DNA of 62,950 bases, counting the filler, from Ministeria vibrans ATCC 50519 (taxonomy: Eukaryota > Protista > Filasterea): the NCBI GenBank assembly GCA_943704425.1. It is 6 parts of 6 records of this genome, joined end to end, with 100 filler letters (N's around TTAATTAATTAA, not from the genome) between each part and the next. Parts side by side here need not be neighbours in the genome. Positions count along the whole stretch, not along the records: positions 1 to 17,196 come from CALSCP010002697.1; 5 more parts are not named here. One strand, written 5' to 3'. Below the pieces are notes generated by a model. The model saw only the letters and a list, made by a program, of their open reading frames with translations. It did no database searches and was not told the origin of the DNA. Below, piece by piece: positions 994-9,407 of this stretch (the stretch's first letter is position 1; each line of letters begins with the position of its first letter). Both the position numbers and the translations under genes were made by a program.

Positions 994-3900
994 ATGCCGA
1001 GACGCGTCTCGTGTGTCGTTGCCCTGCTTCTCCTTTGCAGTGTACGGCACTCCTTTTCGTCGACGCCGCCGCAAACGGCTCAACAGTGGCCCAAGGAGTC
1101 GCCTCTGTCCGCACTGCTTCCGTCTGCTTTGGCGCCCCAGCTGTCCGCACACAGCCTGCCCAGACTCGCGACTGTCGACCAACAGCGTACACAACTGCAC
1201 AATGCACGGCTGCTTGTCGCCGACGCTGTGCCTGGTGCGCCCCATCTCGTCCGACGAGCGCTCATTTCGTCCGAGGAGTACAACGCCGAAACCGCCGCAC
1301 TAGCACAGTTCTACAGCGCTTTCAATGGCCCCGGCTGGATTAATACCATATGTACGTTGCTTTACCAACTGCTCATGATGCACACATTGTGTGCATCATT
1401 GTATTCAATGTGTGTCAATGACATACTTTTTATCAATTTTTGAGTTTCAATCTCTCCCACTCACTCCCTCTTTCTCTCTTCTGCAGTCGGCTACCAACCG
1501 TGGCGCTCGGATCGCGATCACTGTGGCCAGTGGTTTGGTGTGTATTGTGACACGGACGGCTATGTCATTGCATTGATTCTCGATGCCAATCAGCTCTCCG
1601 GCTCGTTCCCCACTCTCCCGTCCTTCTACCAGGGCCTTCCGAAGATGGCACTCGTCGCAATGGAGCACAGCAACGGCCAGGGTGCCATTCCCGACGCGTT
1701 TTGCAACTGGTCTGTCCTTCAGGCGTTCTTCGCCCTCAACAACCAGTTCACACACGTCCCCAGCTGCTTTGGTTCCTTGTCGCATCTCTTCCACGTCGAC
1801 TTTGGTTTCAATCGCCTCGCCATGCCCTCGTTCGACCCCTTTTGCGGTCTATTTGCTGGCAATGGCTCTATGGAGATCTTCTCGGTGCTCAACAACAACA
1901 TCCAAGGACCCTTTCCGGCGTGTGTAGCCGAGAGCAAGTCGCTCGTGGACCTCACGCTTTCATTCAACCTGTTCACCGGTGACATGCCCTCGTCCATGTG
2001 CAATCTTACGCAGCTCATTGCCTTGGACGTGTCTGGACTCGCCCTTACCCAACTGCCAGCGTGCGCTCCCTCAGCATGGGCTAACATGGCTCGCTTGCGC
2101 CTCTCCAACAACAACCATCTGTCCGGCTCTATTGTCCCTTTGCTTCGACAAATGCCCTTTCTTACCACTCTGGTTGCAAGCCACACGCAACTGGCGGGTC
2201 CTCTGCCTGCGTCACTTCCTCACGCTTGTGCGCTTGATCAACTTGACCTGACCAACACAACGACCCTAGGCGGCACTCTCGCCGCCTCCTTTCTCTGCAG
2301 CTGTTCCTCCCTCACTCAACTGTACCTGGCCAACGCGGGTCTCTCCGGTCCCCTTCCTTCATGCGCCCTACCTTCACTCCACACCTTTACCGCCAATCAA
2401 AACGCCCTTTCAGGCAATCTCTCCTCCTCCCCTCTTTTCCTCTGCAGCGCCTCCGCCCTCCAAGCCATCGTCCTCTCCAACAACTCCTTCATTGGCCCCA
2501 TCCCCACCTGTCTCGCTCATCTGCCTTTCCTCCAGTTCCTTCACCTTGATGCCAATCAGCTTACCGGCTCCATTCCCGTTCAACTATGCTCCCTCATTCA
2601 TCTCGAAGAACTCTATGTATTCTCAAATCAGCTCTCAGGCGAACGTACAGCCCCTCAAGAACCCCCTCCCCCCTACTCACGCGATATTTTCTTTTTTTTT
2701 TAGTGGATCAATGTTTTCTCAATGACTTTCGCAACATGACTCAAATCAAGTTGTTTCTAAACAACCTAACAGGCGCTCTCCCGGCCGTTTGCAATGCAGA
2801 AAAGCTCATGTAAATTGCAAAACGGTGGAGTTTACAGTCTCACAATTTTTATGCGTTTTTGTAGTGTTTTGGATTTGGAGGCCAACCAGATGAGCTCCTC
2901 TTCCCCTTTTAATTGTTTGACGGGACTGCCTGCACTTGAATTTCTTGCACTTGGTTCGATGAATATGACGGGTGTGTCCATTGGTGATCCACTGTGGTGC
3001 TCGTCGCTTGCGTCGTCTCTCACCTACTTGGATCTGAGCAATAGTCACCTTCACGGAGAGATTCCCGATTGCTTTGCTTCCGTCATGCCGTATCTCATTT
3101 TTATCTCCATGCAAGATAACACACTTGTCACGGGCTCCATTTCTCCTCTCTGCGGTTTTCCATTTGTACGTGGGCTCTCATTTACCGGATCGGGTGTCTC
3201 AGGCGCTATTCCGTCGTGCATCTTTACCGCCTCCCACGACCTGCGCTTCTTCTTCTTCTCCCGCACCCACCTTGAAGGTCCTCTTCCGGACACTGTTTGC
3301 GCTGCGCCGAATCTCGTGTCGCTTTACATCACCAACGCGACTGCAATCAACGGCACTATTCCCACTTGTATTGCTATCAATCAACCATACATGGTGGAAA
3401 TCATCGCTGAAAACGCACAATTGTCCGGAGAGCTTCCCGAGGCACTTTGTCGCTCACAGTCACTTTTGCAGCTCAATTTTAAAGGAAATCGCCTGACAGG
3501 GGTTATTCCAAACTGCCTTGGCAATGTGACGACTCTCACTGCCCTTGACCTCTCTGGAAATCAGTAAACGCGCAAATAATACAATACAATACCAAGTGAG
3601 TTGTTAATTGGCTTTTTTTTGCATTTTAGGTTTGTTGGTGAATTTCCAACCTCCCTGTGTGACCTCGCATCGATGCAGCTGCTGTTTCTTGCAGATAATC
3701 GCCTTACCGGCATATTACCTGACTGTGTGGGACGTCTTCGGGCACTCTTTGGGTTTGTGGTCGCCAACAATTCGTTCACGGGTACTCCTCCTTCGTCTCT
3801 TTGCTCTCTTCCACTCCTGGAAGATCTGACACTAAGTGGCAATGCGCTTGAATCGTTTCCTAACTGTTCTGTTGTCCCCAATTCACTTCCCTCGCTGATT

Positions 3901-6900: not shown

Positions 6901-9407
6901 AATCAACTGACAGGCCCACTATTTTCCTCTATGACAACCAATGTTACACTGACATCCAATCTTGTACGTGACCAAACATGTCTTCTCTCACTTTCGGGGG
7001 CGCTTTACCCTTACTCCTTTTTTCTTTTTCTTAGGAACACGTTGACTTTTCACATAATTTTTTGTCGGGCTCGCTCATGGCGGACGTGTGGGTGCAATTT
7101 GACAATTTGCGAGTGCTCAATTTGCGGCAGAACAGTCTGACGGGTGTTGTGGACGCTGCGTCGTTTGTGCCGCTCGTGCGTACATTGCACGCATGTCAGA
7201 TTGATTTGAATTTTCTCAGCTGTGCACTGCCGGCGCTCACTGAGTCGGATTTGGCGCACTATACTTCCGAAGAGGTGTCCAAGCGCTTTGCCATTCTCAA
7301 TGGGAACAATTTTGACTGCCCAATTCCCGCGGCAGTCACAGAGAAGGACGTGGCGGGCGGAAGCTACGTGTGCAGCACCGAACCGTACTTTCTTGTGCTC
7401 TACATCTCACTTGGGGGTGGACTTGTCTTTGTACTGACAGCCTTTCTCGTGGGCCGTCGACGCACCGCTGCGCGACTGGCACTGACGACGCGTACCACGG
7501 TGCATCGGAGTGTACAGTACTCGTCTGAGGAGGACGATGGGCTTGCAGTGAAGTCGTCGACGGGAATGGCCCAGTCGAGCGAGGATCCTCTCTCTGTCGT
7601 CTATGTGACGCCCAAACTGGCTGAAGCAGGTGCACGCACTGTGCTCACGCTCGACTTGAGCATTCTTTGTTTAGCGGGCCTCTCGCTCGTTGCCTTGTTG
7701 GTTTTGCTTCCGTTGTACTGGACTGCCGAGTCGCCGTACACGTGTCGCGGCAGTCTGGCACTGACCATGGCCTATCTGGAGCAGAGCACAACGTCCGTCC
7801 AGTGGCGCACCTGGCTGGTGGCTCTCATTGTCTCGCTGTGTGCCATTGTAATTCCCGTTGTGCTTTCACGGGTGGGTCGCACCTGGCGAGTGTTTTTGCA
7901 GCAACAGGAGAAGGCGCTGCGTGACACAGAGGTGGACGGGCCCACCGGCCACGATAGTACCACTGTGAGGATGGAGGCGACTGCTAGTGTGCCCGTGATG
8001 TTGCCACGTTCTCGCGTGCTCCTTCGTCGTGCTGTTGCCGCACTGCTCTGCGTGGGATTTCTGTCGAGTGTCATTTTTATTGACGTTGCTTATGTCTATG
8101 TGGACTCGCTGACGAGTGTGTCTCAGTCGACCAAAGCAGTGCTATTCACCGTTACGACGGCATTTTCGGTCTTTGGCGAGTCTATGTTTCTCTCGTGGAT
8201 GGAACAGACGATTGTGCAACTGAGTGTGGTGGAGCGCAGTGACAGTGCGCGTCTTGCTTGGCGTCGTGACCATCGCGGAGTGCGCTTTTACGTTGCGTTG
8301 CTCTTCTCTGTGCTTGACGTGGTCTTTGCGCCTGTTATAGCCACGATGTTATTTGATCCCCGTTGCTTCTACTATTCTATCATTACGTCTGACTCGACGG
8401 CTGCCTCCTTTACCGTGAGTACCTGTGCACTGCGAGTGGTGGATCCCAACGTGAACACAGGTGGCATTGAGACCGTCACGTGTGCGCGCAACGAAACCCT
8501 TGCTCTCACAACGTCCACCGACATTCCCTTCACCTACTCGGCCACATGCTACTCTGCGTTGCTACAGACATTTGTGCCCGTCATGCTTCTGGCGTTGGCG
8601 CTGCGTGCCTTTGTGCTGCCCACCATCTGGCTACTGCGCTCGTCGCATCGCGTCCGTCGTCTTGTGGCCGCTTTCAAACTCAAGTGCGGCAGTCGGAAGA
8701 AGACAAAGAAGAAGGAGGCGGAAGGGGAAGTGGTGGAGGGGGGAGAGAGTAAGAGTAAGGCTGTGCAATTGCATCATTCGGATGAGTTTGTAGCGGAGGA
8801 ACGCACAGTGATGCTGACGAGCATTGTGATTGCGCTCACGTATGGCCTTGCCGCGCCCCTGGTTGTCGTTGCGGCGCTGGTGTGCACCCTGGCACGCCGC
8901 ACTGCACTTGTGCTTGTGATTGCACAGTGGCGGGTGGTGCGTGTGGACGAGGGCGACGGGGCTGGAGGTGATGAGGCCATGGTGGGGTCACAGCCTGTGT
9001 ATACCGTTCCTCGCGACGTGGGCACTCCTTCGTCCATTTTGCTGCTTGTCTTTTCCTTCTGTGCCAGCTTCTTTCTGTTTATTTTCTTCCTTGGGCAACT
9101 TCCCGGTCGCTATGTTCTCTGTGTCATTCCCGCGATTGCCCTTGTGCTCTACCTGATCATTAAGAAATGGCGCAAATCCAACCACTTTGCACGCGACTAC
9201 AGTGTGTCGAGTCGCTCGAGCTCCACTGCCTGTCTCGCCGACAGCCACATTGTGAACCCTTACTCGATGGCGGCCGTGCTGGCGTCCACCTCGTCCGCCA
9301 AGCAGCTTGATGAGATTGCCAATCGGCCCCCGAATCGCCCCAAGAGTCGTCCTCCTTCGCATGTCATGATGGCGACCTTTGTTGATTGTGACGCAAGTGA
9401 GGCGTAG
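994..9407 (+). CDS. Giant LRR ectodomain + polytopic (~11 TM) membrane protein; 14 exons, ~2,250 aa
   Basis: Signal peptide MPRRVSCVVALLLLCSVRHSFS; LRRNT cap (AALAQFYSAFNGPGW...WFGVYC...VIALILDANQLSGSFP); dozens of plant-type LxxLxLxxNxLxGxIPxC repeats. 13 GT-AG introns restore one frame (approx. 1352-1486, 2645-2703, 2810-2864, 3564-3629, 4548-4598, 4711-4767, 4836-5383, 5761-5819, 5908-5988, 6093-6170, 6248-6293, 6516-6825, 6964-7034). Last exon 7035-9407 has the LRR C-cap (GNNFDCPIP) and the hydrophobic segments. Confidence 0.85.
4901..5370 (+). repeat. Intronic array of TATCACTTTGTTT(CT)n units, the largest copy of the dispersed family
   Basis: Many imperfect units with a fixed core and variable CT number, inside intron 7 of the LRR gene. 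Confidence 0.9.
6616..6808. repeat. (AAT)n microsatellite in an LRR gene intron
   Basis: Pure AAT run; source of the spurious poly-Ile ORF. Confidence 0.98.

Follow-up and report, generated by a model that had tools for sequence, protein, structure and literature searches.

The window, by which we mean the whole 62,950-nucleotide stretch of Ministeria vibrans DNA analyzed here, carries one expressed gene that places an LRR ectodomain and a polytopic membrane module on one transcript. The gene (994-9407, + strand) consists of 13 exons, one fewer than the 14 counted in an earlier, sequence-only reading of this DNA, and encodes a protein of ~2,233 aa, as judged from open reading frames, junction enumeration, and, in part, RNA. 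The structural models support a module fold belonging to the TMEM16/OSCA/TMC (TCS, or "anoctamin") superfamily and closest to OSCA/TMEM63, and we hold this reading of architecture and fold with high confidence. Within this known superfamily, we take the family and its architecture to be new and so far undescribed: no published description of an LRR and OSCA/TMEM63-fold fusion, or of such a family, was found, in line with the sequence-only reading, which did not know the fusion as characterized. Features of the gene and its product are collected in Table 1.

TABLE 1 Exons, domains, and membrane segments of the LRR-membrane module gene (residue numbers of membrane segments are those of the module)
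Feature	Position in window	Strand	Basis
Exon 1: start codon, signal peptide, low-complexity spacer, first half of LRRNT-like cap	994..1351	+	ORF, translation
Signal peptide (~aa 1-23)	994-1062	+	Translation
Exon 1/exon 2 junction: only sensible GT..AG option		+	Predicted
Exon 2: LRRNT-like W..C.W.GV.C motif, LRRs	1487..2644	+	Translation, Pfam LRR_1/LRR_4/LRR_8, junctions
Exon 3: one LRR	2704..2809	+	Frame-consistent GT..AG on both sides
Exon 4: LRRs	2865..3563	+	Pfam LRR matches, junctions
Exon 5: LRRs	3630..4547	+	Pfam LRR_8 (1.5e-16), junctions
Exon 6: LRR	4599..4682	+	Least certain 3' junction of model
Exon 7: LRRs	5384..5760	+	Open frame with LRR pattern, junctions
Exon 8: LRR	5820..5907	+	Junction enumeration
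Exon 9: LRR	5989..6092	+	Junction enumeration; alternative in-frame acceptor 5998
Exon 10: LRR	6171..6247	+	Junction enumeration
Exon 11: LRRs	6294..6515	+	3' end RNA-verified
Exon 12: LRRs	6826..6963	+	Both ends RNA-verified
Exon 13: last LRRs, Cys cap, 11 membrane helices, cytosolic tail, stop	7035..9407	+	Open frame
C-terminal LRR cap, Cys-containing	7299..7385	+	Translation, family consensus
TM0, first helix, out to in; basic cytosolic loop after	7380..7457	+	Hydropathy peak 2.3, positive-inside count
TM1 and TM2 (aa 88-124, 148-195)	7611..7934	+	AF2 helices
Short cytosolic TM2-TM3 loop	7935..8006	+	AF2 loop, no Pfam match
TM3, TM4, TM5 (aa 220-335)	8007..8354	+	AF2 pLDDT >90
Extracellular Cys-rich loop, beta-hairpin (aa 336-398)	8355..8543	+	AF2 strands 350-364, 376-390
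TM6 and cytosolic extension (aa 399-447); Lys/Arg-rich loop after	8544..8690	+	AF2
TM7-TM8 helical hairpin (aa 470-536)	8757..8957	+	AF2 helices 470-501, 503-536
TM9 and TM10 (aa 560-619)	9027..9206	+	AF2
Cytosolic C-terminal tail, disordered	9207..9404	+	pLDDT <50

The ectodomain and its family

The reading frame begins with an ATG at 994 and a signal-peptide-like N-terminus (two Arg and a hydrophobic run), followed by an LRRNT-like "W..C.W.GV.C" motif that straddles the exon 1/exon 2 junction. Every large exon yields Pfam LRR_1, LRR_4, or LRR_8 matches, and a loose LRR pattern matches the joined model 42 times between aa 146 and 1468, with spacings of mostly 23 to 26 aa. The ectodomain amounts to ~1,500 to 1,540 aa of plant-type LRRs (~55 repeats) ahead of TM0, and the family consensus of its C-terminal cap is "L.GN.F.C.....P..D.....Y.CGS". 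To our knowledge, an ectodomain of ~55 repeats is about twice as long as those of the longest plant receptors. Translation and Pfam scanning recovered the signal peptide, LRRNT cap, and long LRR array where the earlier reading had placed them; Pfam likewise returned no kinase or 7TM match in the window protein, agreeing with its view that both were missing.

When 1.84 billion proteins were scanned in full with HMMER, 110 distant relatives emerged (E values of 6.5e-10 to 1e-3) that are colinear with the module from TM0 to TM10; at 50% identity, the unannotated family forms 110 clusters or more, and the membrane core is its best-conserved part. In each of the eight long relatives tested, LRRs at the N-terminus are the sole Pfam domains, and LRR length varies widely, with TM0 lying anywhere from ~aa 200 to ~1,190.

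The same genome encodes a paralogue (G000:C218; L003:1595-6301) of 1,568 aa with the same layout. It shares the LRR ectodomain, TM0, TM3-TM10 core, and four-Cys loop with the window protein but is intronless, has just ~480 aa of LRRs, and retains a 300-aa TM2-TM3 insert ending in an OSCA-like "AP.P.DI.W" motif. OSCA/TMEM63 proteins carry a motif of this kind just before TM3, and the OSCA of the same genome has "APPPSTVNW" at this place. The AlphaFold2 (AF2) model of the paralogue retrieves the same structural set as the module, TMEM63A and OSCA first (Z 14.5 downwards), and the language-model neighbours are PHM7_cyt+Anoctamin clusters (0.87, 184 to 185 shared features). The paralogue has the look of a form midway between OSCA-like proteins and the family of the window protein, although AF2 left its insert unfolded.

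The membrane module: fold and possible function

The C-terminal 685 aa, numbered here from the translation of window positions 7350-9404, form the module, whose 11 helices all lie in the last exon. Hydropathy delineates 10 to 11 hydrophobic segments in this exon, close to the ~11 reported earlier, and the Cys-rich extracellular loop noted at that time between segments 6 and 7 is borne out: C339, C359, C378, and C400 (the last at the start of TM6) are 96 to 100% conserved across the 110 relatives. The loop also bears one NET sequon. The predicted inside loops have 6, 6, 5, 14 (the loop after TM6), 3, and 7 Lys plus Arg residues, as opposed to 0, 1, 1, 3, and 0 for those outside, and the topology (N-terminus outside, C-terminus inside, 11 helices) matches that of OSCA/TMEM63.

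Conservation extends to the "LLP.Y" motif of TM1 (P121 and Y123 at ~80%), to P424 in TM6 (99%), and to the "LLTFG...P.LA" motif at the TM7-TM8 turn, in which G499 and P503 are almost invariant; TM2-TM3 loops are of low complexity, with a family median of ~40 aa. Within the family, Asn, Lys, Gln, Ser, and Tyr are conserved at positions on TM3-TM6. By column counts, the conserved polar positions of TM3-TM5 are N245, Y248, K273, W276, N277, N323, and P328, where the window protein has D, Y, S, G, E, D, and P, respectively. It departs from the consensus at seven conserved, mostly polar positions (N245D, K273S, W276G, N277E, N323D, R526Q, and D583Q) and, therefore, may have diverged in function or become degenerate.

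An AF2 model of the module, built without templates from an alignment of family relatives, reached a pTM of 0.74 with core pLDDT above 90 (212 residues at ≥90), TM0 being poorly modelled (pLDDT <50). In an unbiased VIA-align scan of the model against 48,161 PDB chains, 13 TMEM16/OSCA/TMC-superfamily chains ranked first (Z 13.4 to 23.4), and the first unrelated chain scored 7.8. TMEM63A (Z 23.4; 377 aa, 4.0 Å) and OSCA1.2 (23.2) lead TMEM16F (19.9), afTMEM16 (19.4), TMC-2 (18.7), and TMC-1 (18.2), and Ist2 chains also match (13.4 to 15.6). In a second structural look, ranks 1 to 20 were all OSCA/TMEM63 (Z 22.2 to 24.7 over 348 to 424 residues). The best 50 Foldseek rows listed were all TMEM16/OSCA/TMEM63/TMC, with weak scores (E 2.8e-3 at best), and the nearest protein-language-model clusters are Anoctamin, RSN1_7TM, and TMC (0.82). 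The superfamily fold proposed in the sequence-only reading is thereby supported at the level of a predicted structure, the high-Z matches of the model being superfamily chains throughout; neither of the outcomes it had named as contrary, a lack of superfamily similarity or a GPCR or transporter fold, appeared among the structural matches.

As an explanation of the whole, we favor, with somewhat better than even confidence, an LRR solenoid controlling a TCS-fold conducting module, which, if true, makes the protein a one-chain receptor-channel. As in its structural relatives, the module would provide a hydrophilic pathway across the membrane, between TM3 and TM7, and would conduct ions, lipids, or both. 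The covalently attached solenoid would control this pathway in either of two ways: through a ligand or surface that it binds outside the cell, or as a tether or spring relaying force to the gating helices via TM0 and the four-Cys ectoloop. A TMEM16-type Ca2+ site is absent, because no TM6-TM8 column is acidic in ≥60% of members, and there is no OSCA-type cytosolic domain; therefore, extracellular control is the most economical reading. Taken separately, conduction of ions or lipids by the module, argued by analogy, is in our judgment evenly balanced, and gating by the LRR ectodomain is a more tentative proposition; an LRR-gated channel or scramblase activity is an inference.

The fold does not prove conduction, since some superfamily members, such as the TMEM16 homologue Ist2, act mainly as tethers. 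With Ist2 chains among the structural matches, several conserved polar TM3-TM5 positions lost in the window protein, and an LRR length variation typical of recognition and adhesion proteins, the product might instead be a giant LRR protein for adhesion or recognition, whose correctly assigned but nonconducting module serves as a membrane anchor, dimerization platform, or signalling scaffold. We consider this unlikely: the almost complete conservation of some Pro, Gly, and Cys residues and the retention of Asn, Lys, and Gln within helices are not expected of a mere anchor, and structurally the nearest proteins are channels and scramblases.

At the sequence level, Pfam searches with the module and 55 family members returned nothing even at E values up to 10, whether for RSN1_TM, PHM7_cyt, and RSN1_7TM or for Anoctamin and TMC, and a PDB profile search with the module gave no match; the genome's own OSCA genes match all three OSCA signatures. 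Against the same genome's OSCA, hhalign and HMM matches are not significant (E 0.007 to 0.08): TM1 weakly matches TM1 (hhalign), and TM9 and TM10 weakly match TM9/TM10 (family HMM). TM7-TM8 also matches the equivalent region of this OSCA over 23 aa at 39% identity, likewise without significance. The OSCA-like motifs singled out in the earlier reading are present, in the order given and colinear, but their resemblance is statistically nonsignificant.

The lack of a significant match to any TCS family, the Foldseek TM-scores of just ~0.3, and the best Z of up to ~14 that, per the tool notes, helical models may reach by chance would fit an unrelated or convergent polytopic protein (e.g., a transporter), with AF2 drawn to a familiar 10-helix arrangement. 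This is very improbable given Z scores of 23 to 24.7 over 370 to 420 aligned residues, far above the chance background, and the gap from 13.4 to 7.8 that parts superfamily members from all other chains. Moreover, the model is template-free, language-model features independently give the same superfamily, the module is colinear with OSCA both in its 11-helix N-out topology and in the three weak sequence matches, and the paralogue's motif sits right before TM3.

Gene model and transcript

Spliced in silico, the exons yield a single 6,702-nt open frame. RNA verifies just the last two introns (6516-6825 and 6964-7034), and the remaining ten are predictions that are canonical (GT..AG) and frame-consistent. 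Spliced contigs from three RNA-type runs of two studies join exon 6826-6963 to 7035-9407, those of runs X1, X2, and X5 skipping the 71-nt GT..AG intron; DNA run X6 is unspliced, and the joint between LRR exon and membrane exon is absent from it. Upstream of 6826, the loose end of the RNA contigs corresponds to window positions 6486-6515, followed by GT (the 3' end of exon 11). One RNA contig, that of run X2, extends beyond 9440 and has 3,309 nt (3.3 kb) of spliced sequence upstream of 6826, which by length arithmetic reaches into exon 2. The last exon, covered by RNA contigs from 7035 to at least 9440, has one frame open from 7035 to 9404 that encodes the final LRRs, the Cys cap, and every membrane helix. 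Separate transcripts for the LRR and membrane parts, named in advance as evidence against the fusion, are contradicted by contigs that splice both together.

Among predicted junctions, 4682/5384 is the sole canonical GT..AG pair that preserves the frame from exon 6 to exon 7, and the exon 9 acceptor was set at 5989 because it keeps the 24-aa repeat period. The 701-nt intron after exon 6 contains a CT-rich minisatellite (repeat array).

That a neighbouring LRR gene and membrane-protein gene were misread as one is close to refuted: although 10 of the 12 introns, 5' exons included, are only predicted, the LRRs, cap, and all membrane helices share one frame in the last exon, which RNA contigs splice to upstream LRR exons, and the identical fusion occurs within a single ORF in intronless relatives and in the paralogue.

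Comparison with known systems

Like plant LRR-RLPs/RLKs, the protein has a signal peptide, an LRRNT-like "W..C.W.GV.C" cap, 23- to 26-aa "L..L.L..N.LSG.IP" repeats, and a C-terminal Cys cap followed by a membrane helix; it differs in having neither a kinase nor a short tail, its single helix running on into a 10-helix channel-fold module. OSCA/TMEM63 proteins (CSC family, TC 1.A.17.5) are mechanically and osmotically activated cation channels that have lately been reported as lipid scramblases too (PMC13013810, PMC11753361, PMC11534332). The module resembles them in its 11 helices, including the extra N-terminal TM0, its extracellular N-terminus and cytosolic C-terminus, its TM7-TM8 helical hairpin with a conserved Pro, and its lack of a TMEM16-type Ca2+ site. 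However, a short disordered loop replaces the TM2-TM3 cytosolic domain, the three OSCA Pfam signatures are missing, and a 63-aa four-Cys beta-hairpin ectoloop is added between TM5 and TM6. Moreover, TM0, which in OSCA follows just a few residues, here comes after ~1,540 aa of extracellular LRRs.

TMEM16/anoctamins and TMC1/2 have the 10-helix core in common with the module, but their N-termini are cytosolic and they have 10 helices, whereas the module is N-out with 11. In the available part of the account by Medrano-Soto et al. (2018; PMC5868767), these are other branches of the superfamily, whose seven families are Pfam detectable and 700 to 1,000 aa in length, and that part makes no mention of an LRR fusion. 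LRRC8/VRAC, the volume-regulated anion channel (e.g., PMC6086657), likewise joins a channel-forming membrane domain covalently to a regulatory LRR domain; however, its LRRs are cytosolic and C-terminal, whereas those of the window protein are extracellular and N-terminal, and six four-helix, pannexin-like subunits, unrelated in fold and topology, make up its pore.

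Predicted fold and topology of the membrane module

The protein encoded at 994-9407 is a single chain in which a membrane module of predicted OSCA/TMEM63 fold lies beneath an extracellular LRR solenoid. AlphaFold2 (AF2) modeling of this C-terminal module (helices TM0 to TM10), from a 90-sequence alignment and no templates, returned a pLDDT of 73 and a pTM of 0.74, with a core above 90; in the model, TM0 is followed by ten long helices, and aa 350 to 390 form a beta-hairpin. The model has the predicted ten-helix core arrangement of the TCS (anoctamin) superfamily, that is, of TMEM16, OSCA/TMEM63 (CSC), and TMC, including the TM7–TM8 hairpin. 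The best 50 Foldseek matches listed were all TMEM16, OSCA, TMEM63, or TMC chains; the statistics for superfamily chains were weak (E of 2.8e-3 or worse, TM-score of ~0.3). In a Foldseek-independent scan of the model against 48,161 representative chains, the 13 best matches all belonged to the superfamily (Z, 13.4 to 23.4), and the next chain had a Z of 7.8. TMEM63A (Z, 23.4; 377 aa aligned at 4.0 A) and OSCA1.2 (23.2; 392 aa) led, followed by OSCA2.3 (21.2), OSCA3.1 (20.9), TMEM16F (19.9), afTMEM16 (19.4), TMC-2 (18.7), TMEM16A (18.6), TMC-1 (18.2), and Ist2 (15.6). OSCA/TMEM63 is the nearest branch in three dimensions, holding ranks 1 to 4 in this unbiased scan with a lead over TMEM16 of only ~2 to 3 Z units; among the Foldseek candidates, once rescored, it occupied ranks 1 to 20 (Z, 22.2 to 24.7), with TMEM16 beneath (21.5 or lower). 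The OSCA/TMEM16/TMC-type fold proposed in the sequence-only reading is supported by the AF2 model and its matches. Protein-language-model neighbors of the module (Anoctamin, RSN1_7TM, and TMC clusters; score, 0.82) serve as a lead only.

Hydropathy resolves 10 to 11 segments in the module, and counts of K+R per loop (6, 6, 5, 14, 3, and 7 inside versus 0, 1, 1, 3, and 0 outside) fit the 11-helix, N-out/C-in topology of OSCA/TMEM63, not that of TMEM16 or TMC. Hydropathy, AF2 helices, and this positive-inside count together support eleven helices with an extracellular N terminus and a cytosolic C terminus, and the N-out orientation is required by the signal peptide and LRR ectodomain. Against the family-conserved positions (see the table), the window protein is off consensus at seven: D245, S273, G276, E277, D323, Q526, and Q583. 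At three of these, it has acidic residues (D245, E277, and D323) versus Asn in ~65 to 82% of the family, and at position 273, it has Ser versus Lys in ~77%; these substitutions change the charge on helices whose counterparts in related structures line the pathway.

We infer that the module conducts, as a pore or a scramblase, and that the LRR part gates it; in this role, the solenoid would either detect a ligand or transmit force to the module. Our tentative proposal is that the window protein is the founding assembled-genome member of a widespread protist family of single-chain receptor-channels, in which an OSCA/TMEM63-type pore or scramblase has exchanged its cytosolic regulatory domain for a very large extracellular LRR solenoid and would be opened by an extracellular ligand or by tether force rather than by bilayer tension alone. 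An alternative reading keeps the same fold and architecture and makes the module a non-conducting anchor or scaffold, which we consider rather unlikely.

The similarity in fold has no significant counterpart in sequence. Pfam gave no match between the module and any TCS family and, at E values up to 10, no RSN1, PHM7, Anoctamin, or TMC match in 55 family members; a profile search of PDB sequences with the module found none (the best, at an E of 0.16, being a dynein chain). A word-index homologue search yielded 0 matches for the module, 1 for this genome's OSCA, and 0 for the membrane part of the paralogue, and a genome search with PF02714 recovered other loci, the window gene not among them. 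Comparisons of the module or family with this genome's OSCA by hhalign, HMM, and BLASTP were colinear and non-significant (E of 0.007 or worse); the hhalign value (~0.07) was obtained against an alignment of three near-identical OSCA sequences. The short matches fall at TM1, the TM7–8 hairpin, TM9, and TM10, and the TM1 "LLP.Y" of the module weakly resembles the OSCA "VLPVNW" (E of ~0.07). The OSCA-like motifs to which the sequence-only reading pointed therefore hold as to position and order but, lacking significance, prove nothing by themselves; in these searches, the module shares no significant sequence similarity with any TCS member family. Given the structural matches, a convergent or mis-predicted fold seems very improbable.

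A family of LRR-bearing relatives

A full scan with HMMER, covering 1.84 billion representative proteins, recovered 110 relatives (best E, 6.5e-10), which are colinear from TM0 to TM10 by local iteration; N-terminal LRRs are the sole domains in 8 of 8 long relatives tested. Ten sampled clusters all derive from metagenome and read-assembly collections and are unnamed or called "hypothetical protein" or "LRR protein," with one labeled an ABC transporter, such that current annotation hides the channel fold. One relative is an intronless 4.6-kb open reading frame (ORF) on a 119-kb metagenome contig. The metagenome relative P0003 bears the source name [quoted passage not shown] probably a misannotation, since its Pfam scan gave LRR domains only. 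In one family alignment (A1), 1 of 55 shorter members also matches Pfam Ion_trans (1.5e-8), which may reflect another fusion or an error in gene calling.

A genome-wide paralogue count, as the earlier reading had called for, found the family to consist of two genes in the 29.7-Mb assembly, the second being an intronless ORF of 1,568 aa that encodes, in order, ~480 aa of LRRs, TM0 to TM2, a cytosolic insert of 300 aa, and the TM3-to-TM10 core seen in the window protein, four-Cys loop included. The insert ends in "AP.P.DI.W" immediately before TM3, where this genome's OSCA has "APPPSTVNW," a type of motif that we take to be a hallmark of OSCA/TMEM63. Language-model neighbors of the paralogue are PHM7_cyt-plus-Anoctamin clusters (0.87; 184 to 185 shared features), and the first structural matches of its model are TMEM63A and OSCA; model residue 520 aligns with approximately residue 367 of OSCA1.2, placing TM3 where expected. 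The paralogue may stand midway between OSCA-like proteins and the family of the window protein, a link that is no more than suggestive because AF2 leaves the insert unstructured (pLDDT of ~35). The genome also carries two canonical OSCA genes, ~7 kb apart and 93% identical, both intronless (735 and 764 aa), and additional RSN1_7TM loci.

Gene model, transcript, and ectodomain

The host contig, CALSCP010002697.1, belongs to an assembly of 29.7 Mb in 2,860 contigs and is eukaryotic DNA. LRR-rich open segments lie in a row on the + strand, with short pyrimidine-rich gaps between them, and enumeration of every GT..AG pair that keeps the frame open gave 13 exons; 10 introns are 46 to 135 nt long, and the remaining two, of 701 and 310 nt, are both occupied by repeat arrays. 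Introns 1 to 10 and the start codon are predictions, and the last two introns are RNA supported. Joined locally, the exons total 6,702 nt in an uninterrupted frame of 2,233 aa, a product that served for the frame check and repeat count alone, every search having used single-exon references.

Contigs from three RNA-type runs in two studies have 6964-7034 (GT..AG) spliced out, whereas a DNA run spans the same stretch unspliced. In the RNA contigs, exon 12 begins at 6826 and is preceded by sequence ending at 6515. In one of these contigs, the spliced sequence upstream of 6826 amounts to 3,309 nt, which, given the model exon lengths, puts the contig start within exon 2; at its other end, the contig continues beyond 9440. 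Of the words sampled from the gene, ~0.76 are present in the first-study runs; exons account for 0.80 of the model. Exon 13 alone encodes, in a single frame, LRRs, a Cys cap, and all membrane helices. The splicing and the content of exon 13 thus make the LRR and membrane parts one transcript and one protein, as the sequence-only reading had assumed; for all that most introns are predicted, a gene-model artefact is hardly credible.

The N terminus resembles a signal peptide, a "W..C.W.GV.C" cap straddles the exon 1/2 junction, and Pfam LRR_1, LRR_4, and LRR_8 matches occur in each large exon; across all large exons and the module, Pfam found no family other than LRR. The joined model holds 42 loose LRR patterns (aa 146 to 1468), spaced mostly 23 to 26 aa apart, and the ectodomain has 26 N-glycosylation sequons and 55 Cys, with TM0 beginning at aa 1564. 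Downstream lies an ORF with TPR repeats that has no apparent connection to the LRR-channel gene; tRNA and Rfam scans across the window gave no matches.

Features of the window gene, its surroundings, and related loci (positions in the window unless a contig or locus is named; residues count along the translation of 7350-9404)
Feature	Location	Strand	Basis or remark
Exon 1	994-1351	+	GT..AG enumeration
Exon 2	1487-2644	+	GT..AG enumeration
Exon 3	2704-2809	+	GT..AG enumeration
Exon 4	2865-3563	+	GT..AG enumeration
Exon 5	3630-4547	+	GT..AG enumeration
Exon 6	4599-4682	+	GT..AG enumeration
Exon 7	5384-5760	+	GT..AG enumeration
Exon 8	5820-5907	+	GT..AG enumeration
Exon 9	5989-6092	+	GT..AG enumeration
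Exon 10	6171-6247	+	GT..AG enumeration
Exon 11	6294-6515	+	GT..AG enumeration
Exon 12	6826-6963	+	GT..AG enumeration
Exon 13	7035-9407	+	GT..AG enumeration
CT-rich minisatellite (intron)	4915-5343		Units of ~20-22 nt, higher-order period 85 nt, ~400 nt in total
(AAT)64 microsatellite (intron)	6616-6807		Perfect
TM3-TM5 acidic substitutions	8007-8354		
(AG)46 (intergenic)	10244-10336		Perfect or near-perfect
(TC)29 (intergenic)	11383-11441		Perfect or near-perfect
TPR ORF, 477 aa	11950-13383	+	TPR_12/TPR_10 repeats (E 1e-85), nephrocystin-3-type TPR match
Candidate open frame, 364 aa	15959-17053	-	G+C-rich, Ser/Thr/Ala-rich, without Pfam match
(TAA)36 (intergenic)	17088-17196		Perfect or near-perfect, reaches edge of piece
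Paralogue	G000:C218 (L003:1595-6301)	+	
Canonical OSCA gene	G000:C2616:12971-13633 (L004)		
Canonical OSCA gene	G000:C2616:20272-20937 (L005)		
RSN1_7TM loci	C1890, C2538		
Conserved, TM1	P121, Y123		Family alignment
Conserved, TM3	N245, Y248		Family alignment
Conserved, TM4	K273, W276, N277		Family alignment
Conserved, TM5	N323, P328		Family alignment
Conserved, around ectoloop	C339, C359, C378, Y396, C400		Family alignment
Conserved, TM6	Q399, S402, P410, P424		Family alignment
Conserved, helix-helix turn	T497, G499, P503		Family alignment
Conserved, further	R526, D583		Family alignment

Novelty and comparison with known systems

OSCA/TMEM63, TMEM16, and TMC proteins are central in osmosensing, touch, hearing, and lipid scrambling, and debate continues over the route that force or ligands take to their gates. 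To our knowledge, every described TCS family senses through the bilayer itself, through cytosolic domains, or through separate accessory proteins. A family with large extracellular LRRs covalently joined to the pore fold would allow gating by a tether or a ligand to be tested in a natural system; if our proposal is true, the window protein would be the first TCS protein to carry an extracellular sensor of its own and would be a natural counterpart of the tethered TMC channel of hair cells. The family would form an undescribed branch of the superfamily, invisible to current domain libraries, and would be a candidate kinase-free surface-recognition or immune-like signaling route in protists.

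A survey of the anoctamin superfamily describes seven families, each Pfam detectable and 700 to 1,000 aa long, and the portions of it consulted make no mention of an LRR ectodomain (PMC5868767). Our literature search found no description of LRRs fused to OSCA, TMEM63, TMEM16, or TMC; since, in addition, LRRC8 is unrelated in fold, we rate the family and its domain architecture as both new within the TCS superfamily.

All three OSCA/TMEM63 domains, matched by both canonical OSCA genes of this genome, are absent from the module: RSN1_TM (PF13967; TM0 to TM2), which this genome's OSCA matches at 2e-15; the cytosolic PHM7_cyt (TM2-TM3), in place of which the module has a domain-free loop of ~25 to 45 aa; and RSN1_7TM (PF02714; TM3 to TM9), unmatched at E values up to 10. 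Family-wide, the TM2-TM3 loops are low in complexity (median, ~40 aa), with a long insert only in the paralogue. The Ca2+ site of TMEM16 (Asn/Asp/Glu on TM6 to TM8) is also absent, no TM6-to-TM8 column being acidic in at least 60% of members; conserved there instead are Q399, C400, S402, P410, P424, T497, G499, P503, and R526. The module likewise lacks the Anoctamin domain (PF04547), and the cytosolic N-terminal domain of TMEM16 contrasts with the extracellular N terminus of the window protein. For TMC, there is no Pfam match to PF07810, and structural similarity lies below that to OSCA.

Beyond the superfamily, the ectodomain features of plant-type LRR receptors (RLP/RLK) are all present in the window protein, which differs from them in having neither a kinase nor a short tail and in continuing with ten further helices after the first. 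LRRC8 channels combine LRRs with a four-helix pannexin-like pore domain, but their LRRs are cytosolic and C-terminal and their fold is unrelated; the module's structural matches include no LRRC8 or pannexin chain. Unlike LRRC8/VRAC, the window protein carries its LRRs N-terminally, behind a signal peptide.
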